The notes beneath the pieces are model-generated. The model had not been told where the DNA came from. It did no database searches and saw only the letters and a list, made by a program, of their open reading frames with translations. A stretch of 64,000 nucleotides of DNA from contig JANHCV010000015.1 in the NCBI GenBank assembly GCA_025594325.1, forward strand, positions 744,001 to 808,000, written 5' to 3'. Positions 9,314 through 27,091 of this stretch are shown here, one piece after another; within the stretch, counting starts at the first letter, position 1, and each line of letters begins with the position of its first letter. Position numbers and translations under genes: made by a program. The stretch is from Blastocladiella emersonii ATCC 22665 (lineage: Eukaryota > Fungi > Blastocladiomycota).

Positions 9314-9531
9314 ATTTGCCCTTTCTCCTTATAAGTTCAACAATATACTCTAGTTCAGAACATTCGTTCAAACCGGTACCACGACGTATTGACAGGACGC
9401 GTTGCGCCACTTGCTCGACGTGGCAGGCGCGCCGCGTGACGTTTCGGCGCCGCAGATCGACCGACTTGGAGCGATGAGCGGCGCTCTCGCCCTACACAAC
9501 AACGCTCCCCATCCGATTCACTCCCAACACC

Positions 9532-10863
9532 ATGGAAGCCAATGAACTGCATGCAACCCGCCCGGCGCGCTTCACGGACCTTCCCGCGGAATTCTCGACT
9601 CGATTCAAATTGACGAGTACGGGTGCTGCCTTGCCCCTAGTGTTGACTTGAAGCCATCGGCAATGTCGACTCGGACGCAAGCTCAGACTCGCAACCCGAA
9701 CTTGACGAGTTTGTTGCGGCGCGCAATGTCGGTGCCATCATTCGCGAAATCGCTGCGATCGCAGAGCTTCGGTTGCGTCGGGGATTCCGTGAGCACGGCT
9801 TCATCAGTGACGCTGCTCTTGACGCACTTGCGCGCTTGGGCGCGCCCAACGACGTGATCGCCTTCATATCCAACTTCCAAGGCGCCATGTTTGTCTTTGC
9901 CGATTACAACCGAGCAGTGTACCGGTACAAGGGAGGCAATTGGTTTGACGTTCCGTTTGAGGGGTCGCTGGCTGTTCCGTACGGTCAACTGCTCGTTGCA
10001 CTCCTGTGCGACCAGATGACTTCGGCCGAACCGCTTCAAATGCTCGGTCAGCAAACGTCAGGTTATGCACTTCCTGACGCTCACAGGCACTTTCACCTAC
10101 TACTTTTCCCCGGCGTTCGGCGCGGTGCCCGTCCGCTGTCGCACTGGAGCCCAAGCGTCTACGCGTACATTGATTCGCTGCCGCTCGTCTGCTTCAAACA
10201 CGCGAGCTTGCAAGCGTCGTTGCCGGCCGTGGACATGGCGCAAGGCCGCGATCGTGGTCACGGTGAATCATACAATTTTCGGCCATCGAGCCGATCCCAC
10301 GTTCCGCTCATGATTCCTCGCCGCAGCCGCCCGATGACCTTCCTGACTTGTCGTGGGCGCCATGGCAGTACGCGATCCACTGCATGCTGAGCAAGGTTCC
10401 GGGGCTCACTCCCACGGCGTAGGCGATTCCTGAGGACGCTCGCATTTTACTCTTCTCGCGCGAGGCGCTCTGCCGCACAAGCTTCTTGTACCTCGGCGAG
10501 GCTGCAAGCGGTAGTACTGGACCCGGTACCAAGGCGGCATGGATCATTGAGCAGCTGTACCGCGCCGCGCCCGCTGTCTTTGTTAATGACATCGTTCAGG
10601 TCAGCGTGACGAGTCCGGCGTTTACTTGGCGCATGCTCCCGCGCGGCGCCCTGAACGGACTCCGGCCGTACAAGTGGCTCCTCGCCGCCGCATGTGTGGC
10701 CCTGGACCGCCTTACAAGCCGGGAAACTGTAATGCGCGATGCGCTTTCTGATCTCTTCGCCGCGGCTTCAACAACGGCGCGTTCGCCCGAGTTCCGCGCC
10801 ATGTTTGCGGCCGAGTGCAGCTATCGCGGGATTGACGTGAACGTGTTCTTTGGTGACGATTAG
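9532..10863 (+). pseudogene. Decayed F-box gene
   Basis: ATG at 9532 gives MEANELHATRPARFTDLPAEF (F-box start motif), then the frame is lost. Protein-like pieces continue in ORFs 9773-10390 and 10486-10863. The 5' part is paralogous to 18985-19171. Confidence 0.55.
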
Positions 10864-11199
10864 ACCTGTACTCGAACAGAATATATCCACGTTACCTTCC
10901 TCACGAACTTTGTCTATAGGTCGGGATCCTGCTCGACGCGTCAATTGGCGAAGCGATGCGTTGTCGGCGGTGATGGTCAACCTGCCAGGGGCGCCACGAC
11001 CCTCTTGCGCCTAAGCATCGCGATCCGATCAGAGGAGCAACGCGACTGGCCCGGAACCATGTCGCTTTCGAGTCGAATGAACGACACGCTCCTGTGGGTG
11101 GATTGGCTGCTTCCCACGGCGCGCACCTGGCTTGGGTGTCGACGCCAAGGCCCCTCCCCCGTTCCCGCTCTTCCGCAACAACCCTCGCCCGCTTTTGCT

Positions 11200-13035
11200 A
11201 TGAATCCTTCTTCACCCGACTCGATGCAACCTCATGAACCGGTCCCCCTGACCCTCGACGCGCTGCCGACCGAGCTACAGCTCGACATTGCGTCGCGCCT
11301 CTCGCTCCGTGACGCGGCGGCTCTCCGCGCGACCTCTCGTGTCATCAACGACTCAGACCTCTGGCGCGGCAAAGTGTGGTGGGGCTTGCTCTTTGCTCTC
11401 GCAGCGGGCGACCATGACCGCTTCTTCGCGCTGGCGCCGCCGTTTTACGGTCCTCGCCGCCGCCGCCGTTCTCGCGCTAACGAGAGCCCGAAGCCGTGCA
11501 CCAACGCCGAGATGAAAGCTATCTTCCTCGACCTCGCTATTGCTCTCGTCACTCGCGACGTGGGCGACCGCAAGCGGTGGGCGATCCTGCGCTCGTGGGC
11601 ATGCGGCCGGCTGCCCGTCAGCGAATACCCGTATGTGCGGCTACATCGTCTTGCCATGGACCACAGCGCCATCAACGCGATGCTCGTCGTCTCGACGTGG
11701 ACCAACCGCAACGGCCGCAACCTGCACGACATGTACGTCAAGCTTCGCCGCCCGACCCGCTCGCCGCTCGCACACGCGATTCAAATTGTCAGCACGACTG
11801 TGGCGAAACGCAGGTTTACGCCCGAGCAGATCGCGCCGCTGTTGCGCGCCAAGTTCTACTCGGCGTGCCAGCTGCGCCAGGTCCACGCTGCGGTCCGCCT
11901 TCTCCTCGCGCAACCGCCCGAGTTTTGCCTCGACGTTCTACTCGACGCGCCCGCGCACGCCAAGTTTGAGCCCGACAGTCGCACGTGGTCGCTCGAGAGC
12001 GTATTCGAGTCGATCATGCAGGCGTCGCTGCGCGGCGGCGGGGCCATTGCGGTCGCGCGCCTCATGGCGGACCTCACCATCCTCGCACACGCGGCGGGGT
12101 ACGAGGGCCGCGGCGACGGCGGGACCAATATCGAGATCGAGCTCGTCAACGGCGGCATCGAGCCCGTCCGCGCGCGCGTCGAGGCGCTGCTCCCCGAACG
12201 CAACCGCGCTGCTGCCGTTAAACGCCTCGACGCGCTGCTCCCCGTGTTCGGCGCCAACGTGCTCGGCGGCACCGTCTTCTCGCGGCCCTGGCGCGACCTC
12301 GGCGTGCTGCGCGATCCGCTGCCGGGTGCCGTCGACGAGACGCTGCAGCAGGCGCGGTGGTGGTACCCGAACGCAACCATCATTCGTGCCGTCTCGGAGC
12401 GGCTCGTCAGCAAGCACCCGAGCTGGCCCGCCGCTGCGATCCCGGACGTCGCCCAGCGGTTCCCGATCTGCTTCCACCCCAACCTGCACAACTTTGCCGG
12501 TATCCCGAAAGCGTGGCGGCTGCGGTCCGAGCCGTTCACGGACGCCGAGTGGCACGCGCTGCACGCCGACCTCATGGCCGTGTACCGCCGCGAGTCGTCG
12601 CCCGCAGACGACGAGGACGCGGTCGCGGCGCGGTGGCAGTGGCGCGTGATGCCCCAGGACCGCGGCGCGCTGCAGGCGCTCATTGACGTCGAGTACCCGG
12701 GCATGCCGCGCGAGCTCGATACGGACGAGGCCCTCGACGCGCACCCGCTCGGCGTCAACGGGCTCGGGCTGCAGATGATCACGGTCGTCCAGCAGCACAC
12801 GGGCAAGCCGGGCGGCGGGCGGTGGCTCGCCGAGAACGTCACGACGCTGCGAGGCCGGCCGTGGCGCATGTCGGGCGACCTGGTACGGCGCATCCTCACG
12901 GCGCCGTGGGCGTCGCGGCACAAGGTTGAGGTCGTCGCGTTCCTGACGGGCGCGCAGCGGTCGGGGGTGCTGAGCGACCCCATTCTCTGCGATCGCGTTG
13001 AGACGTGGTGTCACGGAGCGACGTCGAGCTCTTGA
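11200..13035 (+). CDS. F-box protein, intronless, C-terminal region of unknown family
   Basis: LTLDALPTELQLDIASRLSLRDAAALRATSRVIN is a canonical F-box. The ORF is long and uninterrupted; likely start is the ATG at 11200. Confidence 0.85.
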   Translation: MNPSSPDSMQPHEPVPLTLDALPTELQLDIASRLSLRDAAALRATSRVINDSDLWRGKVWWGLLFALAAGDHDRFFALAPPFYGPRRRRRSRANESPKPCTNAEMKAIFLDLAIALVTRDVGDRKRWAILRSWACGRLPVSEYPYVRLHRLAMDHSAINAMLVVSTWTNRNGRNLHDMYVKLRRPTRSPLAHAIQIVSTTVAKRRFTPEQIAPLLRAKFYSACQLRQVHAAVRLLLAQPPEFCLDVLLDAPAHAKFEPDSRTWSLESVFESIMQASLRGGGAIAVARLMADLTILAHAAGYEGRGDGGTNIEIELVNGGIEPVRARVEALLPERNRAAAVKRLDALLPVFGANVLGGTVFSRPWRDLGVLRDPLPGAVDETLQQARWWYPNATIIRAVSERLVSKHPSWPAAAIPDVAQRFPICFHPNLHNFAGIPKAWRLRSEPFTDAEWHALHADLMAVYRRESSPADDEDAVAARWQWRVMPQDRGALQALIDVEYPGMPRELDTDEALDAHPLGVNGLGLQMITVVQQHTGKPGGGRWLAENVTTLRGRPWRMSGDLVRRILTAPWASRHKVEVVAFLTGAQRSGVLSDPILCDRVETWCHGATSSS

Positions 13036-14901: not shown

Positions 14902-17049
14902 ATGGACTTGTACAATGAACTTTGGCTCTCTGTCGTGGACCACTTGCTGCAATATGGACAGCGCACCGATGTCTTGGCGCTGTGCATGACTTGTCACCGG
15001 TTCTCAAAGCTGGCCCGCCCGGTCCTCCGCCGGACCATGCGCGTCGAACTCGCGCTCAATGAACTCGACGAACTCGACTCTGTGAGGCCTCCTTCGGGCC
15101 TCTACCTTCACGGCGCTGCGCTTCAGGCGTGGCCCGAATGGATGTCGCTCGTGCGGGAGCTCGACATCGCGCCGGGGCGACTTCCCGTTTGGCACGGACA
15201 GAGCGATCAGCCGTTTCCAATCTCTCCGGTTCCGATACCGATACCAGTTCCCTCGCCAGCGCCAATCGATTCTCAACAACATGTCAACCCTCTTGAACCG
15301 CTCGTTGGTGCTACCGTTGCGGTAGTTGTCGTGCAAGTGGCGGAAGCCTGCCCGCTTCAGTCGCTTCGAATTCATGACTTTTCGCTCAGCAACGCGTGCT
15401 TGATCGAAACCTGCAAGAGCGTTGCGAGCCCGCTCGTGCGACTCAGCCTCTCGCTACATCGGCCATCAGAAGCCCTTGACCTCGGCCTCCTCACTCTGCC
15501 GTCGCTCGCCTCGCTCGAGCTTTATGTTCTCGACCCCGTAAGCACGCCCAATCGACTCGAGGCGCTGCCTCGCACACCCAAGCTTCGGAATCTTACTCTC
15601 ACGCTTCCGGTTGCTGCACCACACGTCGCTGCCCAGATTCACGCCATGCAACACTTGCGCTCGTTGCAGCTACGTCTCAATCCCGGTGCTGGACGCTCCG
15701 AGTTTCAAGCTGCGCTCATTGCGCCAGGCTTCCCCGCTTCGTCGCTCGTACACTTTGAAATGCATAGGCTCAGCGTCGAGGAACTTGAACGACTACCGCC
15801 TATGCCGCGACTCCAATCCATGATCATGCAGCGCCACCAGAGCCACATCGAAGTCGGACCAGACCCAGCGCTTGACTCCCTGTCTATGGGCCTCGATCGC
15901 GCGGAGCGGATTGCGGCGCACTTTCCAAACCTGCGTCGGGTCACGATCACTGGACCGAGCACGTCTGACTTGGTCGTGGATCTGCGTTGGCTGAGCCTCA
16001 CCCCATCTCTTGCGTTCATTGACATGGGGCGGCTATATTCCGGGGCGCGCGGCCCAGGTAGCCCTAGGATAGAGACCCTTTTGGCCGACTGTCGCGATCT
16101 CACATTCCCCTCGTTGGAGAATCTGACTGTTCCCCACGCATTATGGAAGCCTCTCACTCGAGTTCTTCAGGCACCAAATCTCACGGCTCTCTGTATCCGC
16201 GGGCCACCCAACACCACTTCCAACCTTCTCGCGTCGCATGCGTCCTCTGCGCGCCTGACGCACCTTGAGCTCGACGTCCGCATCGCGAACTTCTCACTGC
16301 AACCCAGCATGTTCCCGTGCCTCCGTTCGCTCTCAATCCGCCCAGTTTCTAACAACACCATTGCTGGCCAATGCATGTCCGCGTGGTCGACTGTCACTCG
16401 ATTGCAGCTTCTCGACATGTGGTCTCTCACGTCGCTCTTCGACCTGCACATCGTGTTCGCCGAGTTTCCAGCCGTGCGGGAACTCACACTCAGCGCGGCG
16501 ACCACGTCAATGCCTGGAATCGCCCTTTTCCTTGACCCGCGCGCGTTGCCCGAGCTCACTGGTGGTCGCAGAACGTTACAGAGGCTGATCATTGAGAATG
16601 ATGACCGCTGCGTGATATGGCACAGCGATGCCGCCAGTCGCGCGACTCCCATCGACATTCGTTGGACGCGCTGGTCCCAAACGCAGGTGCTGCGCGAGCT
16701 TGCAGAAAAGACTCGACTCTCTGGTGCTCCGTTGGGCATCCATTTGCGCATCGGGTTCAGCGACGATGCGCCTGATCCGGGCGGCGCTTCGACCGTGGCG
16801 AAATTGCTCGCTAAGTTTGCTAATTATCAAGGCGCTGAAGTAGCGGTGGGTCCGACGCTTGTCGAGGCAGCGGAGGAAGCTGGGTCAAAGAAGGGCGGGG
16901 TCGCGCGTTGGCTCAAACGCAAGCTGAGCCTTCTTTCCGTCAAGGCAACGGCGCCCGCGGTGAGTGACGACGGCGTTTGCGACCCTTGTGTGATCGCGGC
17001 GCTGTGCGAGTGCCTCGGAACGGCCGGCGTCAAATATCAAATGCTATAG
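14902..17049 (+). CDS. F-box / leucine-rich-repeat (RNI-like) protein
   Basis: N-terminal LYNELWLSVVDHL...DVLALCMTCHRFSKLARPVL is F-box-like. Many LxxLxL repeats follow (LRNLTL, LRSLQL, LENLTV, LTHLEL, LRSLSI). Confidence 0.8.
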   Translation: MDLYNELWLSVVDHLLQYGQRTDVLALCMTCHRFSKLARPVLRRTMRVELALNELDELDSVRPPSGLYLHGAALQAWPEWMSLVRELDIAPGRLPVWHGQSDQPFPISPVPIPIPVPSPAPIDSQQHVNPLEPLVGATVAVVVVQVAEACPLQSLRIHDFSLSNACLIETCKSVASPLVRLSLSLHRPSEALDLGLLTLPSLASLELYVLDPVSTPNRLEALPRTPKLRNLTLTLPVAAPHVAAQIHAMQHLRSLQLRLNPGAGRSEFQAALIAPGFPASSLVHFEMHRLSVEELERLPPMPRLQSMIMQRHQSHIEVGPDPALDSLSMGLDRAERIAAHFPNLRRVTITGPSTSDLVVDLRWLSLTPSLAFIDMGRLYSGARGPGSPRIETLLADCRDLTFPSLENLTVPHALWKPLTRVLQAPNLTALCIRGPPNTTSNLLASHASSARLTHLELDVRIANFSLQPSMFPCLRSLSIRPVSNNTIAGQCMSAWSTVTRLQLLDMWSLTSLFDLHIVFAEFPAVRELTLSAATTSMPGIALFLDPRALPELTGGRRTLQRLIIENDDRCVIWHSDAASRATPIDIRWTRWSQTQVLRELAEKTRLSGAPLGIHLRIGFSDDAPDPGGASTVAKLLAKFANYQGAEVAVGPTLVEAAEEAGSKKGGVARWLKRKLSLLSVKATAPAVSDDGVCDPCVIAALCECLGTAGVKYQML

Positions 17050-17692
17050 CGAAAGAAGGAGCCGTGGACGCGTCTGCATGTTCCGTACGTGCGGTCCAAT
17101 AGAAGTACATCGTTCCTCAGTCTTGCAAGCAACTTCGTGGCTCTGACTCTTCACCACGCCCTACCTCTCACACCAAAGAAAGCTAGCGTTAACGGATCAA
17201 GCGCACGAGGTGAGGTGCCAGTAGGCGCGTGCTACCAGATTTGAGGTTGAGAAAACGCTAGGGGTCCAGTGACGGTCTTTGCGGTTGAAAAACGCGCAGC
17301 TCGTCGCCTCAGATCAAGTGAGCCCGACGTTTGTGCACGACGTGTAACCCTCGCTTCGCATTCAAGATTCATGGCGCGTAGTTGTGTGGTCCCAAGAGCA
17401 GGCCACGGCAGAGGCGCCGATGCGGTGGATGACGCGACGCGCCACTCGCATGATGCGGCGGCGCCACTGCAAGAACGCCGCACTTTGCCCTCCGTCCATG
17501 ATCGCCTCGGAGCAAGTCAAGGACAACGCAGACGCATCGAATGTGATTTCAATTTCGAATTCTAAACCGTCGAACGCGGTACAGAATGAGTTCAAGCTCC
17601 TCAACGCCGATCGAGAGAGGTGGATGGCGGGGTGGGGAGAGGGGAGCGAGATGTCAGGGGTGGGGGTGGGGTGCGGGGAGGAACAGAGCACG

Positions 17693-18242
17693 ACGTACCG
17701 GAGATGTTGCAGAAGGCGTAGATCTGCAGCACGTTGACGTAGGTCGGGGTCAGGAGCGAGTACTGGATGAGGTTGAAGATCGGGTGGTACCACTCGAGGT
17801 ACAGGAGCGACGACACGAGGTACACGCCGTACGTGGCGACCAGCGAGAAGAGCGTGAGCGCGACCTTGTTCTCGTCGAGGCGGGCAAAGGCGTTGAGCGA
17901 GTTGAGGCCGCGGAGCTGCGCGAGCTCGGGTTTTTCGATCTCGAATTGCGCCATTGTCGAGAGCACGATGATGGCGAGCATGGTGATGGCGACGATGGCG
18001 AACAGGACGATCACCATGTGGAAGACGTGGCGGGCCGACTGCGGGCGGTTGCCGAGCGAGGCGATGAACGTGATGCACAGGGCGAGGACGTAGAGCGGGC
18101 GCAGGATGAGGAGGAACGAGGACACGGCCGTGTAGGTGCCCGGGTGGTTGGTGCGCGACGGGATCGACTTGAGGTACACCGAGTTCGGGTTCTCCATGAG
18201 CAGGATGAAGCCCGAGACCAGAGTGTGGAACGCGATGTAGAA
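17693..18242 (-). repeat. 550-bp near-identical copy of part of chitin synthase exon 3 (24676-25225)
   Basis: Base-by-base comparison at offset 6983 is identical except two substitutions near the 5' (high-coordinate) end. It encodes the same [11 protein letters not shown]...QIYAFCNIS peptide. Confidence 0.97.
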
Positions 18243-19060
18243 GTGAGCCTCGGCACGTTCCTGCAGCGTCGTTGCGGGCTCGAGTTTTGGAAGCGAACGG
18301 TGGGGAATCGGGGTAGAAGATGTATGTTTTGCATAGATGTGATCGAATGCCTGCGAACAAGTCTTGGGTAGGAGCGCCCGTGGCAGCACGGCCAAGTACT
18401 GGCAGAGCGTGTTCAGACCCGAGGGGTCCAGCAAGAAAGCCTCGCACAAGATGGCATCTACCAAATGCGGGTATCTTAAGAGATGATTTCATGGTTAAGT
18501 CATGAGTGGGATGTCCGAGAGGAGAGCGCGAGCGGCGCGAACGAAGTTCGGGACAGGCTCGATTTGTGGGAGATGAATGGTCGGCCCCACCTTGGTAAGC
18601 ACGCAGTCGTCCTGGTTGCCAAAACTTTTGCTGTGTAGGCGGCCGAACGGCTCGGGCGTGAGTCGCGCGATCAGGCGCTGAAGAGTAGGTCCGTCAAACG
18701 CGTCGGCAGCAGGGAGCCAACGGTTGAAGTCACTCGTCTGGGACGCGGACGCGACACACTCGCGATCAGCCAAGTGGTACAAGTAGCGCGCAAGCGGCAA
18801 GCAGTTGTGCGGAACATCGGTCTGTGGCGACGGGTTCGGGCTCCGCCATTCGTGAAAATCGGGTTGGAGCACAAAGGCGCAGACCCAGACCGACTGGGTC
18901 GCCGAGTCGGACGCGATCGCTGCGAAGCCGGCCGTTGACAGCGCAACGGCGAGGCGAGGGATCGCAGGACCACCGCCGTGACGAGTTCTGCGGGAAGGTC
19001 CGCGATGCGCGCCGGGCGGGTTGCATGCAGTTCATTGGCTTCCGTGGTGATGGGTTGCAT
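18243..19060 (-). pseudogene. Decayed F-box gene whose reading frame runs into the chitin synthase exon copy
   Basis: MQPITTEANELHATRPARIADLPAELVTAVVL (F-box start), a frameshift near 18960, then two in-frame stops (TAA at 18495-18497 and TGA just after). ORFs 18495-18872 and 17601-18464 share one frame. Confidence 0.7.
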
Positions 19061-19267
19061 TCGGCGAGAGTACTGGTGGTGGTGAGGGTCGCACCGCTCA
19101 TCGCTCCAAGTCGGCTGGTCGGAGTCGTCACGCGGCGCGCCTGCCACTACGAATGCGTGGCGCAACGCGTCTCGTCGCTCCTGACAAAGAACCAGCGAGA
19201 ACGCAGCCGATGTTTGCAAAGATCTCAGGCGAGTGTATTCAGTGGCAGTGCTACATGGGCCCGGAAC

Positions 19268-20262
19268 TCACCAACCGCCCGACCACACGATCCGCGGTGC
19301 GGGACCCGCGGGCGCGCCATTGCCGCCGGGCGACTCGTCGTCCGAGTCTTCGGGGTTATCGCTGGACGCGTTCGCCGCGCCCGCCGCCGCAGCGGCAGGA
19401 ACCGCGCTCGGGTCGGGCTGCCCGGCGTACGTGAGCCACGCGAGAACGAGCGTCGCGGTCGTCCGCCAATGTCCGCGGACGCGGGCGACGAGGTCGAGCG
19501 AGAGCGGGGTGACGAGGTCGCGGTAGCACCGCTCCATGCGGTCGATGGCGGCGCGGATGTGCCACGAGATGAGGCGGTGGTCCTCGAGCTCGAGCGCGTA
19601 CAGGTCGACTTCGAGGCGGAACAGGACGTCTGTTGGTAGGACGGGGTCAGTGAGGGTTGGTGGGGTGAGGGATAACGAAGGGCGTACTCGAGATGTCGCG
19701 CCACGGATCGAGTCTCTGCGACCGCTGCGCCTTGTGGCTGCTGCTGCCGCCGGCGGGGTTCCAGAACCCGAACCCGGAGGAGGTGCTGGCTGCCGTGTTG
19801 GTGCGCTGCGGGCGGTGGTGGTGGATCCCAGCCGACGCCGACGCGTGCGGGGTCGGCCCGACCTCGGACGACGCGGCGCTATCCGCCCCACTGCCGCCGC
19901 CAAGCGTCGCGGCGCTGCTGCCGGGCCCGGTCGGCGGCGTCGCGTTACCCGGCAGCGTCACGATCTCGTCGCCGTCCTCGTCGGCTTCGGGGACGGGCGA
20001 CGGCGCGGCGCGGCGGGGTGCTGGTACAGGTGTTCGGGCGGAGTCGGGGTCGGGGTCCCGATGGGGTCGGGGTCGGGGTCCCAATAGGCACGGCGATGGC
20101 ATTGTAGAGGTCGACGACGGAAGGCACGTGGGCGAGGTAGAGCACAATCTGCCTGGACAGGTAGTGGTTGGGTCCGACCGAGACCGAGACCGAGATGGGG
20201 TTGAGGCGGGTGCCCGCGACGTAGGTGTTGGACTCCCGCTGCGAGCCTCTATAGCTGTCCAT
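19268..20262 (-). CDS. Hypothetical low-complexity protein, probably with one intron (about 19628-19685) and a possible frameshift near 20070
   Basis: A GTACGC...CTGAC...CAG intron is followed by the helical coding segment VLFRLEVDLYALELEDHRLISWHIRAAIDRMERCYRDLV. Confidence 0.4.
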
Positions 20263-20860
20263 GAAGCATGCTCGGATTATTTGTTTTCATCGCAGGGAGT
20301 CTTATTAAGTGCATTCGCGGCGGTGGCCATGCAAGAGAGAGCGAAAGCGGCCATTGAGCGCGTCGGACAGAGCAATCGAGGCAACGTTGAGTGTCTCAAT
20401 CGCCTCACGTGTTTGTTCGACGCGTCTCTCACTCATTGTCCGGGAAGGTCCTGCACAAGAAAGCAGCGTTAAAAAGCGGTGGGACTGATCTAACGTTGCT
20501 CTAATGCGACTCGATGGCGACGGGGGCTAGTCCTCGCGGCGGACAGTCGAACGGCCTCAGCGCGACACGCGCGAAGTGAGGGCCAACAAGGAGCAGACAC
20601 TTGAATACAAAACAACGCCGATCAGACAATGGGCACGGCGGTTGTGCCGCCATGAAATGCTTCGGATGCGCCGTTGATCCCAATGGCTCCAAACGAGCCC
20701 GCTGCGACAAATCGTTCCCACGCGCGGACCCTGCGACCGCGCTGACGCGTCAGCTCGGGCAGAGCGCCAGGAGACGTGTCCGAAGAAGCGTTTTATTCAC
20801 GGGCTCAAGGAGTTTGCGGCCGAGATCGCGGCCAGGCCCGACTTTGGCGAGGCCGTCATC

Positions 20861-23332
20861 ATGTCGCGCCGGTGGTACGGCACGTTCGAGTCCGAGACGC
20901 AGGCGCTCGCGCACCGCTTCGGCCCCGCGAAGGAGCCAATTGCGCCTCATCGAGCGGTCCTCGTCCAGGACAGGTTTGTATCCTGGCAGTACCGCAAGGA
21001 GAAGGGCCGCAAGGAGCACTCGATCAAGTGGCGTCCCTGCTGTCGCCGCTGCGGCGACTGGCACCTACGCGCGCCCAGCTACTGCCCGTCGCACACGATC
21101 TGCGAGTCGTCGGCGCCAGCAGCTGCGGCCAACAAGGACGCGCGCGGTGCCTCCGACACGCGCAACGAGCAGGACCAGCGGCTCGCTGTGCGCAAGGCCG
21201 TCCGCATCCTCAACGGGAACCCGCACCGCGTCACGGACCTGTCGTACCCGCCCACCGAGCTCGGCTTCGACATCCCGCGTTTCCTCACGGCCAAGCGCGT
21301 CTTCAAGAAGGCGCCGCCCGCCCGCCTCGACCTCGGCCCCGCTGCCGTCCCGCGCATGGTCAGCGCCGACCAGCAGCGCGCCATCTCCGACCTCAAGCTG
21401 ACCGCCGAGCAGGCCGCCGCCGTCCTCAAGGTGCTCGCCGCCGACGCGCTCGTCGTCTCGGATCCCACGACCAGCGCCGCGCCACCCGTTGTGCCTCCCC
21501 TCCCTGCGCCCGCCGCCGAGTCGACCGCGACCACCCCGCTCGACCAGATCCTCGCCCTGTTTGCGCGGTGCCGCAAGCCCGGTACAGCGCTCAACCAGTT
21601 TGTCGGCCGCGCCATGGCCAGGTGGGACGCCGAGGAAGACGACGGTGACGAGTGGGAGCTCAAGGACGTCGACGACCGTGACGACGAGACCGCGACCGCG
21701 ACCGCGACGCTCGAGGTGCCGCCGCTCGCTGGCGTCACGTCGCGCGGCGGCAAGTCCCGCAAGGGCGCCCGCACCACGTCCGCTCGCCGCGACCACGGCG
21801 CCGCGCGCGAGGGCCACCGCCCGAAGCTGTCGATGCTCGCGCTGCTGCGGCCGGCGGGCCCGTACCCGATCCTGCCGCCCGAGCGCATGTACGCGCGCGT
21901 CACCGACAGCCCGAGGGATGCGCGCACGCGGGGCGCGTTCTACGACGTGGACGGCGTGCTGTGCCGCCTGATTTACCCGAACTTTGTTCGGTATTGCTGG
22001 CGCCACGTCCGCGTCGGCAGTAACTGCGGCGCGTGCGGCGGGAAGAACGAGTGCCGCCATGGGAAGATTCGCCGATTCTGCAGCGACCCTACGTGCGGCG
22101 GCGGGCAGTCGCTGTGCCAGGAGCACGGCAAGGACAAGTACAATTGCGCGCTCTGCCGCGGCGCCCCGATCTGCCGTAACCACGGCAACGGCTGCGACCG
22201 TGGTGGGCACGAGGCCTTTGACTGGTACTGCGGCTGGTGCTTCCGCAAGACCGACAAGGTGCGCGCCGGTCGCGCGTGGCGCGGGGCCAAGGAGCGCTTC
22301 GTCGCGAGCGCCGTGTACCGCCACGTCGCCGCCCGCTACCCGGGCATGGTCGTCATCCACGACGAGCCCGTCGAGCGCGGCCGCTGCATCCGTCGGCCCG
22401 ACCTCCTGTTCCTCGCCGACCGCTTCCGCCTCATCGTCGAGATTGATGAGCACGCGCACAACGCCTACGACCAGGAGGACGAGATGTTGCGGGTGCTCGA
22501 GATCCAGGACGCGCTCGGCCTGCCCACCATCGTGCTGCGCATCAACGTCGACGGGTTCCGCCGCGCCAGCGGCGAGTCGGTCAAGTCGCCCTTCCACTCG
22601 CGCGACCTCGACGCGCACGGCCTGCCGATCCTGCGCGAGGGCAGCGCGGCCGCGGCCGACTGGAGCGCACGCATCGAGCGGCTGCTCGCGCGCATCGACG
22701 CGATCCTCACCGCCAACGCCCCGCACGACTCGGTCACGGTCGAGTGGTTGAACTACGACGGCGACTGCGGGCGCGGTCGCGGTCGGCTGTTTGTCCTGCA
22801 CGACGACGACTCGGTCTCGCTCGGCGCCCCGGGTTCCCTGCAGCTCACCAAGTTCGTCGCGTCGTCGGGCAACAAGTATCCGACCGCCTCGTGCCCCGAC
22901 CAGGCCAAGCTCGATCAGGAGGACGACGAGCTCGAGTACCAGGGCGACGACGAGGAGGAGGAGGAGGAGGACTACGACGGCGTCACGTCGGGCTCGTCGC
23001 AGGTGGGCTACGAGGACGAGGACGAGCTCGAGTCGGCCATCTCGCTCGCGGGCTACTACGGCGGCGACGACGACGACGAAGAGGAGGAGGACACGGACGC
23101 GGACCAGTACGAGCTCGAGATGGTCGAGTCCAAGGAGGTGGACGAGATCGACGTGGCCAAGTCGTTGTCGGCGGCGGCGGTCGGGTCGCGCGGCATCAAG
23201 CGGTCCGCGTCCGACGCCGTGGCGGATGGCGGCGACGAGGACGCGCCGCACCGGCCCGCTAAGCGCGTGCTGACGCGGGCGGCCCAGAAGCGACAGCAGC
23301 AGCAGCAGCAGCAGCAGCAGGCCGAGGAGTAG
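20861..23332 (+). CDS. Cys/His-repeat protein with a Vsr/DUF559-like PD-(D/E)xK endonuclease of NCLDV type and an acidic/polyQ tail
   Basis: Intronless 823-aa ORF. CxHGK..C..CGG.S.C.HG repeats, then YCGWCF...KERFV...RRPDLLF...LIVEIDEHAH..Y..EDE..RVLEI..ALG.PTIVLRINVDGF...DW..RIERL...VEWLNYD, colinear with giant-virus 'restriction endonuclease' proteins as I recall them. Confidence 0.8.
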   Translation: MSRRWYGTFESETQALAHRFGPAKEPIAPHRAVLVQDRFVSWQYRKEKGRKEHSIKWRPCCRRCGDWHLRAPSYCPSHTICESSAPAAAANKDARGASDTRNEQDQRLAVRKAVRILNGNPHRVTDLSYPPTELGFDIPRFLTAKRVFKKAPPARLDLGPAAVPRMVSADQQRAISDLKLTAEQAAAVLKVLAADALVVSDPTTSAAPPVVPPLPAPAAESTATTPLDQILALFARCRKPGTALNQFVGRAMARWDAEEDDGDEWELKDVDDRDDETATATATLEVPPLAGVTSRGGKSRKGARTTSARRDHGAAREGHRPKLSMLALLRPAGPYPILPPERMYARVTDSPRDARTRGAFYDVDGVLCRLIYPNFVRYCWRHVRVGSNCGACGGKNECRHGKIRRFCSDPTCGGGQSLCQEHGKDKYNCALCRGAPICRNHGNGCDRGGHEAFDWYCGWCFRKTDKVRAGRAWRGAKERFVASAVYRHVAARYPGMVVIHDEPVERGRCIRRPDLLFLADRFRLIVEIDEHAHNAYDQEDEMLRVLEIQDALGLPTIVLRINVDGFRRASGESVKSPFHSRDLDAHGLPILREGSAAAADWSARIERLLARIDAILTANAPHDSVTVEWLNYDGDCGRGRGRLFVLHDDDSVSLGAPGSLQLTKFVASSGNKYPTASCPDQAKLDQEDDELEYQGDDEEEEEEDYDGVTSGSSQVGYEDEDELESAISLAGYYGGDDDDEEEEDTDADQYELEMVESKEVDEIDVAKSLSAAAVGSRGIKRSASDAVADGGDEDAPHRPAKRVLTRAAQKRQQQQQQQQQAEE

Positions 23333-23950
23333 GGCGCCGACGGTACGTTGGCCGTGGCGCCGTAGTCGTTCGTGGTCGACCTGGGTCGCCACAAGAGTCC
23401 AAGTTTTCTTTTGGTTTTCGTTTTCGTTTTCGTTCGTTTCCATTTTTGTTTCCCTTTGACATTTACGGCGCCCGCTCGCTGTTTGGAGGCCGGGGAGTGG
23501 GCACGACCGCTGGGAGGGGTGGGCCCAGTGGAATAGCATGCATGTATTCTGTTCCCGAACACCCCCGCATGGACTTGATCTCTCAGCCGAGTTTTTGAAC
23601 CACGTGTGTGGCGCAACGCGTCACTCTCTACTCTCGCGAAATTGCCCGAGTAGTTGGGGACTCTCGTGACTCTCACGAAAATTGTCCAGACAGTTCGGTT
23701 CGCAGCAGTAGTGCTTTGGCGTTGAACTCAACGAGGTTGGTCCGTTCGCTGTTGCGGGGCCAAGTGAGTTGTTGCTCCCTTGCGAGTCGGATTGAGGGCA
23801 GACCGAGCGAGCAAAAGGTTCAAAACGACAACAGGGAGCATACATTGCAATCTGGAAAAGAGATACGAGCTAGAAGAGGGAGATGGGAAAGAAGCGATGC
23901 AAAGGCAAAAGGGTGATGCGGAACGACAGCGACGGGCTCGCGCGAGTCGC

Positions 23951-26900
23951 TTAGCAGAAGCCGACGAGGTGGCCGAGCCAGTACACGCACGAGAAGAAGA
24001 AGCGGATGACCGAGAAGATCAGGACCGCGATGAACAGGCCGAACAGGTAGTCCTGCGTGAACTTGGTCGCGCCCGTGATGCCAAAGGTAGCGGGGGAGAG
24101 CACGGCGCCAGCGAGCAGGCCGTTGACGCCGACCCAGATCATGAGCCAGAGCGTGCGGAACTTCTTGAAGTTGTCCTCCTTGTTGTCCTCCTCCTCGTTC
24201 TCCTCGTCGGGCTTGCGCATCTCGGTGACGAGCGCGTTGAAGCGCTGCTCGGTAGCCGAGAAGAAGTCGTTGGCGGCGCGCAGTGGGACCGCCGCGAGCT
24301 CGTCGGTCGGGACGCCGCCAGAACCGCCGCCGCCGCCCGCCGCACCGTGGCCAGCGTCAGAAGCTCCCTTGGTACCCCAGCTTAGGTCTGGAACGCCCAA
24401 TAATATGTTGGTGAGGTTGGGGGAGGTCGGGGGAGGTCGCGGGAGGTCGCGGTAGGTCGGGGAGGCGGCCGGAAGTCGAGGTGAGCCGGAGTGAGTCGAT
24501 GCGCCACGAACGTCGAGGAGACATGAAGGGCAAACGTTGTCGTCGTCGTTAGTGATGTTTCGTGAGGTGTGGTGAGGTGTGGAGGTGTGGGGGAGGTGAG
24601 GGAGGGGTGAGGTGGTCAAGTCCGGGCGGAGTGACTCGACGATCGATCGCGATCAGAGTGACGTCACAGATCAGCACGTACCGGAGATGTTGCAGAAGGC
24701 GTAGATCTGCAGCACGTTGACGTAGGTCGGGGTCAGGAGCGAGTACTGGATGAGGTTGAAGATCGGGTGGTACCACTCGAGGTACAGGAGCGACGACACG
24801 AGGTACACGCCGTACGTGGCGACCAGCGAGAAGAGCGTGAGCGCGACCTTGTTCTCGTCGAGGCGGGCAAAGGCGTTGAGCGAGTTGAGGCCGCGGAGCT
24901 GCGCGAGCTCGGGTTTTTCGATCTCGAATTGCGCCATTGTCGAGAGCACGATGATGGCGAGCATGGTGATGGCGACGATGGCGAACAGGACGATCACCAT
25001 GTGGAAGACGTGGCGGGCCGACTGCGGGCGGTTGCCGAGCGAGGCGATGAACGTGATGCACAGGGCGAGGACGTAGAGCGGGCGCAGGATGAGGAGGAAC
25101 GAGGACACGGCCGTGTAGGTGCCCGGGTGGTTGGTGCGCGACGGGATCGACTTGAGGTACACCGAGTTCGGGTTCTCCATGAGCAGGATGAAGCCCGAGA
25201 CCAGAGTGTGAAAGGCGATGTAGAACGAAGAGAGTGCCAAAAACGCGAAGAGGAAGTTGATAAAGTTGTAGAGCAGCTCGAGGAGGAAACCGATCTTGCG
25301 GAAGATCGAGTGGCCCGAGGAGAAGACGCGCTTGAAGTTTCCGATGGCGTACAGCGAGGCGAACGTCGAGCCGTTGAGCCAGCGGCGGCGCTGCGAGATG
25401 AACTCGGGGAAGTTGTCGGGGGCGTCGGTGATGGCCAGCGAGTTCTTCTCGTACCGCAGGATCCAGTCCTTGTTGTCGGCCATGGCGATCTCGAAGCACA
25501 GGATGCTGCGGGCGGTGGCGAGGAGGGTGGCGAGAGTGGAAGGGGGAGTCGCGAGGGTCAGCGATCGAACGGGCGCGGGGCGCGGCGGGCGCGCGCATCC
25601 GACACGAGGAGCGGCACGCGGAGCGACACGAGGAGCGACACGCGGCGCGACACGAGGAGCGACACGAGAGAGGGGCGTACCGGTCCTCGGCGAGGTACAT
25701 GTTGCCAGCAAAGATGTCAGACGAGTCGTGGAGCTTCTCGCCGATAAAGTACTTCTTGAGCGGCTCGCCGCGCAGGGCCTCGTAGCGGTAGGCCGAAAAC
25801 GCGCCGGGAAGTACGCCGATAAAACCGGCGACGCTTTCCAAAGGCTTGTCGAGGATGTTGCTCATTTTGTACTCGAAATTCTGCGCAGCGATGATCGGGT
25901 TGAGCAGCGACCAGAAGTTGCCCTCGACGGCGATCTCGCCGCACGCGCCGCCGACCTGCTTGTTGAGGAACACGCGCCAGAGGCGGTACAGCGAGAGCGG
26001 CTGCGGCTTGGTGCCGACGTCGAGCAGCAGGCACACGTCGGGCTTGAGCGACTCGGCGACGGCCGAGAAGAACCAGCGGTGCGAGTTGATCTTCTTGGCG
26101 TTCTTCTCCTTGAGGATGAAGAGCAGCTGGAGCGGGACGACGCCCTTGGTGCTGCTCTTGCCGGTCACGAGCTTGGTGCCGTCCTCGGGCGTGCCCTCGA
26201 AGCTCGTCTCGACCGTCGCCTCGAAGATGTGCGCCTGGACCTCGCGCTCGCCGACGCGGGTGCGCATGAGGCCCTCCTGGTAGCAGCCCATGAGGCCGAT
26301 GAGCGCGAGCGTGTCCTTGTTGATCTTGGAACGCCCGTCCGAGATGATGGAAATTACGACCTTGCGCCAGCCGTCCGGACCCCAGTTCTTCTCGTCCTGC
26401 TTCATCATGTCCTTCAAGTTGCTCGCAATACCTTGAAGGGTCTTGATAAACAGCCGGGGCCCTTCCTTGACAATTTTTGATGGAGCTAGCGTTAGTTTTG
26501 CCCGAAAACGGCGAGATCGGCGCGCGGAAGTGCGGGGAAGCGGGGCCAAACCCGAGCGAGTGGCCGGGGGGCCGGAAGGGCGAGGCAGAGGGCCGGGGAA
26601 TCGAGGCAACAATCAGGCAGACGAGGCAGAAGGTCGCGAAAGCGAGGAGGGGGGCGAGGAAAACGAGGTTAAAGTGAGAGACGCACGTTGTACATGGTCA
26701 CGACGATCAGGAGGTCGGTCGTGCGGCCGGTCTGGCGCAGCGAGTAGCCCTTCTCGACGAAGCGGTTGGGGCCCGTCGTGCACGCCGTGTAGCGGAGCTT
26801 CTTGAAATCGTGCTCCTGGTGCGTGAACTGCGACGTGAGCTGCGACGGGATGTCGACCTCGACGATGAGCGACGAGCCCGACAGCGTCTGCTGGATGTTG

Positions 26901-27091
26901 CCGGCGGTGCCGGCAGCCGCGCCAGAGTCGACACGGTGCATGCCGGGCGCGTACGGCGTGTCGACGGTCAAACCGTCGGCGCCGTAGTACGTGTTGCCCT
27001 GCGCGTGCATGTCGATGCCGGGAGCCGCGGGCATGGCCATGGAGCCCGGCTGCTGCTGCATGCCGGAGACGGGGGCGTACTGGTACGACAT
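23951..27091 (-). CDS. CHS: Chitin synthase, division 1 (class I-III); exons 27091-26687, 26465-25681, 25505-24682, 24387-23951 (2451 nt)
   Basis: Splicing at GT-AG sites restores TMYN|E, LAEDR|ILCFE and CNIS|DLSWGTKG. Also [32 protein letters not shown] and a transmembrane region. Total exon length is divisible by 3. Confidence 0.97.
24418..24466. repeat. About 10-bp G-rich tandem repeat (GGGAGGTCGC-like) in the last chitin synthase intron
   Basis: ggggaggtcgggggaggtcgcgggaggtcgcggtaggtcggggagg. Confidence 0.7.
25601..25668. repeat. 12-bp tandem repeat (GACACGAGGAGC, about 5.7 units, alternating variants) in chitin synthase intron 2
   Basis: Read directly from the sequence. Confidence 0.9.

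Follow-up and report, generated by a model that had tools for sequence, protein, structure and literature searches.

Giant-virus DNA has been reported in zoosporic fungi, Blastocladiomycota included, and capsid genes have to date been the main marker by which giant-virus genes were tracked in these hosts (PMC13533422). The repeat genes of the EsV-1-7 type are a cited case of possible host co-option of a viral gene (PMC12993054). Nucleocytoplasmic large DNA viruses (NCLDVs) encode, among other proteins, a zinc-repeat endonuclease family in which Cys/His repeats and a CxxC finger precede a nuclease domain. We know of no member of this NCLDV family that has been biochemically tested. Here we describe a host-resident member, gene H9P43_009763 of the fungus Blastocladiella emersonii ATCC 22665, which lies in a 64,000-nucleotide stretch of contig JANHCV010000015.1 (positions 744,001 to 808,000 of the forward strand, assembly GCA_025594325.1; hereafter the window, to which all nucleotide positions refer). 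On balance we think it probable that the gene encodes a zinc-module-guided DNA endonuclease of this uncharacterised, giant-virus-typical family, acquired from a giant virus long ago, then remodelled and kept by its host. An initial annotation of the window had read the locus as a giant-virus-type zinc-repeat endonuclease domesticated in a fungal chromosome; our analysis confirms the observation and supports that main interpretation. The host-resident member is what is new, since both an NCLDV-type gene in a zoosporic fungus and the PD-(D/E)xK nuclease fold are known.

Results

The predicted nuclease is encoded in an uninterrupted 823-codon open reading frame (ORF) that corresponds with 100% identity to residues 44–866 of H9P43_009763, carried on a contig of 1,068,026 bp (Table 1). 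The initial annotation described this ORF correctly, and every motif that it quoted occurs in the ORF in the order and at the positions it gave; its description of the gene as intronless holds for the single long exon, to which the annotated model adds a first exon and a predicted 49-bp intron. A Cys/His-rich region and the nuclease core occupy the centre of the protein, flanked by long N- and C-terminal extensions with no similarity to viral relatives. A CCxxC..H..C..H finger proposed for the N-terminal extension is present as a motif (CCRRC at residue 60) and is not conserved in the second B. emersonii family member, the paralog H9P43_006579, whose tail is also only 18% identical to the C-terminal tail described here. 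The acidic tail, the basic patches KRSAS and PAKR and the polyglutamine (polyQ) end are all present as predicted, and from the basic patches (at residues 780 and 799) we infer no more than a possible role in nuclear import.

Structure prediction assigns the core a nuclease fold. AlphaFold modelled residues 355–650 with a predicted local distance difference test score (pLDDT) of 85, and the nuclease alone with a pLDDT of 90.2 and a predicted template-modelling score (pTM) of 0.86. The nuclease-alone model comprises a helix (model residues 2–31), three strands (37–39, 54–57 and 62–68), a second helix (77–91) and a final strand (95–101), which together form an α-β-β-β-α-β core. Foldseek comparison of the two models with the Protein Data Bank (PDB) listed only enzymes of the PD-(D/E)xK or restriction-endonuclease fold (50 of 50 listed matches), among them the RLE of the R2 retrotransposon, Bax1, McrC, Hjc, restriction enzymes and cap-snatching nucleases, and residues P513–D514 and E527 are placed by the model at the strands expected for this fold. 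These predictions support membership of the core in the PD-(D/E)xK fold superfamily, the fold anticipated by the initial annotation. Sequence searches of the PDB returned just a chance-level match to the eS31 zinc ribbon with the ORF protein, and weak matches to A20 fingers alone with a family profile.

An alignment of 56 sequences, comprising the 2 fungal proteins and 54 proteins from viral contigs, contains 15 invariant columns: K477, E478, R512, P513, D514, E527, D529, E530, H533, Y536, R544, R560, N562, D564 and L608 in ORF numbering. Both fungal copies keep 15 of the 15, and the previously quoted PD, ExDE..H and RxNxD residues, the putatively catalytic ones among them, all fall in these columns and are intact. 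The fungal protein lacks the Lys that is canonical in (D/E)xK and has the invariant D529 at that position, within the motif E527-x-D529-E530-x2-H533. An earlier assignment of the domain to the Vsr/DUF559 type is not confirmed: Pfam profiles for Vsr and DUF559 matched neither the query (E ≤ 10) nor 40 of its relatives, and chains of Vsr (1vsr) and of 3r3p are not among the 50 listed PDB fold matches of either model. What is left of that assignment is one DUF559-labelled protein in BFVD that matches at 4.4e-5, together with the spacing of E478, D514, E527, H533 and D564 (36/13/6/31, versus 26/13/5/28 in Vsr; PMC3239194), a likeness in active-site layout that we treat as a lead and not as a finding.

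In relatives, the zinc-module region is built from a CxHG[KR] unit with a period of 18 residues (exactly 18 in 98 spacings), which carries Cys, His, Cys and Cys as zinc ligands at positions 1, 3, 10 and 13, varies most at positions 6, 8 and 9, and occurs up to 12 times in a single protein. Such units lie upstream of the nuclease in 55 of 83 ORFs from IMG/VR, with up to nine per protein. The repeats that the initial annotation saw before the fungal nuclease are indeed present, but they are degenerate compared with the regular viral units, numbering about three, spaced irregularly by 21 and 19 residues and changed in the gaps between ligands; the paralog H9P43_006579 has lost them. The terminal CxxC finger shows weak matches to A20 zinc fingers. 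We also considered an EsV-1-7 identity for the CxHGK units and rejected it, because the EsV-1-7 model PF19114 finds no match in CxHGK proteins, the query and its closest relatives among them, and a sister subgroup of the nuclease family that carries EsV-1-7 repeats where the CxHGK units would be has no CxHGK units.

Relatives of this protein abound in giant-virus DNA. A phmmer search with residues 355–650 against 1.84 billion representative proteins yielded 1120 matches at E ≤ 1e-3 and 105 at E ≤ 1e-10, and only the query (P0001) and H9P43_006579 (P0002) fell below 1e-30. This diverged paralog from the same fungus is the sole named cellular relative, and the next 30 best representatives after the two fungal proteins are all environmental. 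No orthologs from other fungi turned up, and in a collection that includes NCBI genomes a whole-protein search for orthologs at ≥50% identity returned the query only; a search with an alignment of the two paralogs gave the same outcome in a run that was probably swamped by low-complexity words. By contrast with this single cellular species, at least 427 IMG/VR stretches encode relatives of the nuclease, 23 of the best 80 IMG/VR loci bear GVMAG names, one relative has a gene for an NCLDV major capsid protein (Capsid_NCLDV, E = 1e-59) as its neighbour and another has a MutS gene nearby. Among viral proteins compared with Foldseek, two UniProt entries (1.4e-14 and 4.5e-13) and the Pithovirus LCPAC404 ‘Endonuclease’ (8.5e-14) are the top structural matches, followed by proteins of Marseillevirus, cedratvirus, Harvfovirus, Heterosigma akashiwo virus, Aureococcus virus and Tetraselmis virus as well as EsV-1-115. 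A tblastn search of phage genomes found no relative, a scan of prokaryote genomes found no close relative in what is a weak test able to detect near relatives only, and PHROGs gave only weak matches, on relatives. Taken together, this distribution clearly points to giant viruses (Nucleocytoviricota) as the home of the family and bears out the giant-virus-type identity first proposed for the gene; vertically inherited fungal orthologs with no viral clade nearby were not what these searches returned.

Several IMG/VR loci (L024, L025, L028, L033 and L034) encode two or three nucleases of the family in a stretch of 21 kb, distributed over both strands, so that inside giant-virus genomes the family shows multi-copy behaviour. 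The relative P0003 is encoded on a 73-kb environmental contig, which also carries a TBP-like gene, a P-type cation ATPase gene and an AAA ATPase gene that holds a Hint/homing-endonuclease (intein) module (L001, 16572–18683, + strand); the gene set of this contig looks typical of giant viruses, and the 21 kb examined showed no capsid gene as a hallmark.

The two fungal proteins are sisters in a neighbour-joining tree (bootstrap 93 of 100). They align over residues 153–718 of P0001 at 29% identity, rising to 39% in the nuclease. H9P43_006579 is a 745-residue protein on a 2.0-Mb contig, has predicted introns, as its gene spans 2873 bp, and is surrounded by genes for a CHD helicase, a myosin-chitin synthase and a peptidase M18. 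A tblastx comparison of the paralog locus with the window detected no shared flanks beyond the gene itself, although its output was noisy. Both paralogs directly adjoin a chitin synthase gene, of the Chitin_synth_1 type in the window (23951–27091, − strand) and of the myosin-chitin synthase type at the other locus (L084, 2572–8404, + strand), which may be coincidence or what remains of an ancient segmental duplication; the two loci showed no further synteny.

Transfer from virus to fungus is the most economical reading of these data, though not a proven one, because hundreds of viral contigs and several NCLDV groups contrast with one fungal species, and it would fit the giant-virus genes already published from Blastocladiomycota (PMC13533422). 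A number of observations weigh against acquisition of a viral nuclease. Identity between the fungal pair and any catalogued viral domain reaches only ~31%; the sequences closest to the pair in the tree (P0029 and P0004) are uncultured and were not found in IMG/VR, and a Pfam scan of their contigs recovered no viral hallmark gene; and the deeper nodes of the neighbour-joining tree are without support. On account of the low identity, the neighbours outside IMG/VR and the weak deep nodes, donor lineage and transfer direction are matters that we infer. Most of the 1120 matches have no known names, so other cellular carriers are possible. On the biochemical side, the PDB fold E-values are all weak (≥1.4e-3), no curated Pfam or NCBIfam model matches the protein, scanned whole and in three pieces, a nuclease-only family profile found no match among PDB sequences at E ≤ 10, and, with Asp replacing the canonical Lys of (D/E)xK, metal-dependent chemistry is presumed. 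An open ORF is moreover a weak sign of selection in DNA of 65% GC, and its length says little here because the antisense strand also carries an open frame of 824 residues.

The phylogenetic points could also be accommodated if the family were eukaryotic, fungal or wider, and had been captured by giant viruses, leaving the Blastocladiella genes as vertical survivors. Such a history would suit a fungal pair that branches deeply, stands at about the same ~31% identity from every catalogued viral domain, is not nested with support in any confirmed viral clade and has nearest neighbours that are not traced to viral contigs, and it would suit two genes that are fully host-like in composition and contain predicted introns. 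Yet it would leave no other named cellular organism among the best matches and no ortholog at ≥50% identity in the collection searched, against a family present across many NCLDV lineages and on hundreds of viral contigs, frequently as more than one copy, and we regard a host origin as unlikely.

We likewise weighed whether the gene is what decay has left of an ancient viral insertion, with an ORF that stays open just through the rarity of stop codons in GC-rich DNA (59–73% GC across the window in 2-kb steps) and a protein no longer made or active. The equally long chance ORF on the antisense strand and the degeneration of the CxHGK units relative to the 18-residue viral units are what a relic might display. 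Codon structure argues otherwise: GC content at the three codon positions of the sense frame is 0.70/0.49/0.93, every 100-codon block keeps the same strong three-base periodicity (0.40–0.59 at position 2 and 0.86–0.97 at position 3), extensions included, and the antisense values (0.905/0.488/0.703) are the mirror image of the sense frame. By this periodicity the sense frame is coding throughout and the antisense ORF is its shadow. All 15 invariant residues are, in addition, preserved in two copies otherwise diverged to 30–40% identity, and decay therefore seems to us quite unlikely. Because the full invariant set is kept, both fungal copies probably remain enzymatically active and in use by the host, and the intact catalytic set, the coding periodicity and the remodelling of the protein would suggest domestication of the fungal gene.

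The chromosomal setting of the gene is fungal. Its neighbours are genes for chitin synthase, thiolase, PTPA, an F-box protein and ribosomal L7Ae, and the 10 kb to each side contain no viral hallmark gene and no other viral-type gene. Relative synonymous codon usage (RSCU) correlates with that of the thiolase and PTPA genes at r = 0.96, and GC content at third codon positions (GC3) is 0.93, in agreement with the host-like codon use noted at the outset; the sampled viral loci have 22–53% GC. No terminal inverted repeats flank the gene, the window holds no further copy, and the gene sits in neither an intron nor an intein. Given the fungal neighbours, the host-like codon use, the non-viral extensions and the missing terminal inverted repeats, the nuclease gene is an old, ameliorated and remodelled resident, and not a fresh insertion, a part of a giant endogenous viral element (GEVE) or contamination.

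A ‘cluster of rearrangement junctions’ had been placed beside the gene; we find instead a single 560-bp direct duplication of 99.1% identity whose copies, ~7 kb apart, bracket the nuclease gene. The duplicated stretch comes from inside the coding sequence of the chitin synthase gene and was copied into the upstream 458-residue gene, and it could reflect segmental duplication, gene conversion or an assembly artefact. This bracketing, together with the multi-copy, module-swapping behaviour of the family in giant viruses (two to three copies per 21 kb, with varied N-terminal fingers), is what might recommend a selfish element still spreading in the fungus, whether as a homing-type endonuclease gene that stands alone or as a passenger of a transposon. 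We consider that very unlikely: the window has one copy, the only other relative detected in B. emersonii is ~30% identical and shares no flanks with it, terminal inverted repeats and an intron or intein location are lacking, and the duplicated chitin synthase fragment, its copies being 99% identical, is far younger than the nuclease gene. The ‘selfish homing-like’ part of the initial annotation is accordingly not upheld, given two copies only ~30% identical and no terminal repeats. Contamination or a recently integrated GEVE, for which the reported giant-virus DNA of zoosporic fungi (PMC13533422) would be a precedent, is extremely improbable on a 1.07-Mb contig with fungal flanks, no viral hallmark within 10 kb on each side, and GC and codon use equal to those of housekeeping neighbours. 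GEVE membership was rejected as a candidate on the grounds that the nuclease is the single viral-type gene within 10 kb on each side and is host-like in GC and codon use, and the outcome that the initial annotation had named as fatal to its reading, a contaminant contig, did not materialise.

Three further features of the window were recorded. A 715-residue ORF at 14902–17049 (+ strand), which is not annotated at NCBI and has no Pfam match, looks by eye like an F-box/leucine-rich-repeat protein in the style of the F-box ORF at 10945–13035, and has a much weaker codon bias than its neighbours (GC3 0.66, RSCU r = 0.74). Positions 18986–19171 and 9396–9591 form an inverted alignment of 200 bp at 79% identity, ~9.4 kb apart. 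A tandem array of 12-nucleotide units (25600–25668; four overlapping copies, 85–100% identity), on the strand opposite to chitin synthase, probably codes for or sits in a low-complexity stretch.

Table 1. Coordinates of the nuclease gene, the parts of its product and adjacent features (nucleotide positions in the window; residues in ORF numbering).
Feature	Position	Strand	Basis or remark
Whole annotated gene H9P43_009763, 866 aa	20683–23332	+	NCBI record, hypothetical protein
H9P43_009763 exon 1	20683–20713 (31 nt)	+	NCBI model
H9P43_009763 intron, GT..AG, 49 bp	20714–20762	+	NCBI model; predicted
H9P43_009763 exon 2	20763–23332	+	NCBI model
Uninterrupted 823-codon ORF	20861–23332	+	First codon is a Met inside the NCBI model
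Antisense 824-aa ORF	21065–23539	−	Shadow in GC-rich DNA; not a gene
Lineage-specific N-terminal region, residues 1–373	20861–21979	+	No Pfam match; absent from viral relatives; partly common to the paralog
CCxxC..H..C..H stretch, residues 60–78	Inside N-terminal region	+	Paralog lacks it
Cys/His-rich zinc-module region, residues 374–461	21980–22243	+	Near-invariant Cys/His columns, unit period, zinc ligands, model
C-x2-H start of zinc-module region	C379/H382	+	Alignment columns
About three degenerate CxHGK-type units, residues 398–445	22052–22195	+	
Terminal C..C..CxxC finger, residues 438–460	22172–22240	+	Abuts nuclease; weakly A20-like
Nuclease core, residues 462–635	22244–22765	+	PD-(D/E)xK-type α-β-β-β-α-β fold (model)
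Lineage-specific C-terminal tail, residues 636–823	22766–23329	+	Asp/Glu-rich runs, two basic patches, polyQ end
Motifs, Cys/His part	CCRRC 60; CRHGK 398; QEHGK 420; RNHG 439; YCGWCF 456		ORF residues
Motifs, nuclease part	RRPDLLF 511; EIDEHAH 527; RINVDGF 560; VEWLNYD 627		ORF residues
Motifs, tail	KRSAS 780; PAKR 799; acidic tail; polyQ end		ORF residues
458-aa annotated gene	17592–20436	−	Upstream neighbour of the nuclease gene
Chitin synthase gene	23951–27091	−	Downstream neighbour of the nuclease gene
Duplication copy, upstream, 560 bp	17683–18242		Inside the 458-aa gene
Duplication copy, downstream, 560 bp	24666–25225		Inside the chitin synthase gene

Discussion

We propose a working model in which the Cys/His units, together with the CxxC finger adjoining helix α1, would bind zinc and hold DNA, while the core would act as a metal-dependent nuclease built around E478 on helix α1, D514 at the start of strand β2 and E527 and D529 on strand β3. 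Residues E530, H533 and D564 would complete the active site, and either K477 on helix α1 or H533 may take the place of the missing Lys. In evolutionary terms, an ancestor of B. emersonii would have taken the gene from a giant virus long ago, after which the gene would have duplicated, drifted to host base composition, picked up one or more predicted introns, and been lengthened at both the N and C termini by long extensions that include an acidic tail, basic patches and polyQ. The enzyme might now serve the host in nuclear DNA processing, repair or defence, as opposed to being a currently mobile selfish element.

A more speculative idea, which we rate as a long shot, is that the 18-residue CxHGK units, with their four zinc ligands and hypervariable positions 6, 8 and 9, are modular DNA-reading units, so that arrays of up to 12 units joined to the nuclease would amount to a natural zinc-finger-nuclease system of giant viruses and the B. 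emersonii copies to re-tooled host nuclear enzymes. The fungal copies may on that supposition, for example, protect the host from the giant viruses of zoosporic fungi or take part in programmed DNA processing.

If acquisition from a giant virus is correct, the locus would extend the giant-virus genes of zoosporic fungi to an enzyme gene that has been remodelled and duplicated and is apparently intact, and it would be a candidate case of early-diverging fungi making lasting use of viral DNA. It further highlights a very large nuclease family of over 1000 representatives, with a modular front end of zinc repeats, that has no Pfam model and, to our knowledge, no studied member.

Comparison with known systems

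The closest counterparts of the fungal protein are the NCLDV zinc-repeat ‘Endonuclease’ proteins, exemplified by A0A481ZHE8 of Pithovirus LCPAC404, A0A2R8FFX4 of Brazilian cedratvirus, A0A076FGG2 of Aureococcus anophagefferens virus, EsV-1-115 (Q8QNG4) and members on IMG/VR GVMAG contigs. The nuclease domains are homologous (tblastn E-values down to 5e-26, Foldseek down to 1e-14), and the fungal protein shares 15 of 15 invariant residues with them and the order of Cys/His repeats, CxxC finger and nuclease. It differs in being two to four times longer, in having extensions not known in viruses and in retaining only about three degenerate units, and its gene is chromosomal, with host-like composition and a predicted intron.

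Among experimentally determined structures, the best fold match is the RLE of the R2 non-LTR retrotransposon (PDB 8gh6, 9nl2 and 9dou; E = 2.2e-3, a weak value, with 22% identity over 104 columns), in which a PD-(D/E)xK-type core likewise directly follows a zinc knuckle. The fungal gene, unlike R2, has no reverse transcriptase or retroelement context, and where R2 has a catalytic Lys the fungal family has Asp at the β3 position. Archaeal Hjc, Bax1 and McrC share the core fold, and three relatives show weak Pfam Hjc matches (best E = 0.017), but these enzymes carry a canonical E-x-K motif, have no zinc repeats and bear no significant sequence relationship to the fungal protein. Vsr and the EDxHD homing endonuclease I-Bth0305I (1vsr and 3r3p; PMC3239194) are, like the fungal core, Lys-less variants of the restriction-endonuclease fold, and the spacing of Vsr E25, D51, H64, H69 and D97 (PMC3239194) may parallel that of fungal E478, D514, E527, H533 and D564, whereas neither enzyme appears in the profile-search matches or among the 50 listed PDB fold matches per model. 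EsV-1-7 repeat proteins (PF19114; Ectocarpus IMM) touch the family through the sister subgroup that carries their repeats, and differ from the B. emersonii protein, which does not match PF19114, in having no CxHGK units.

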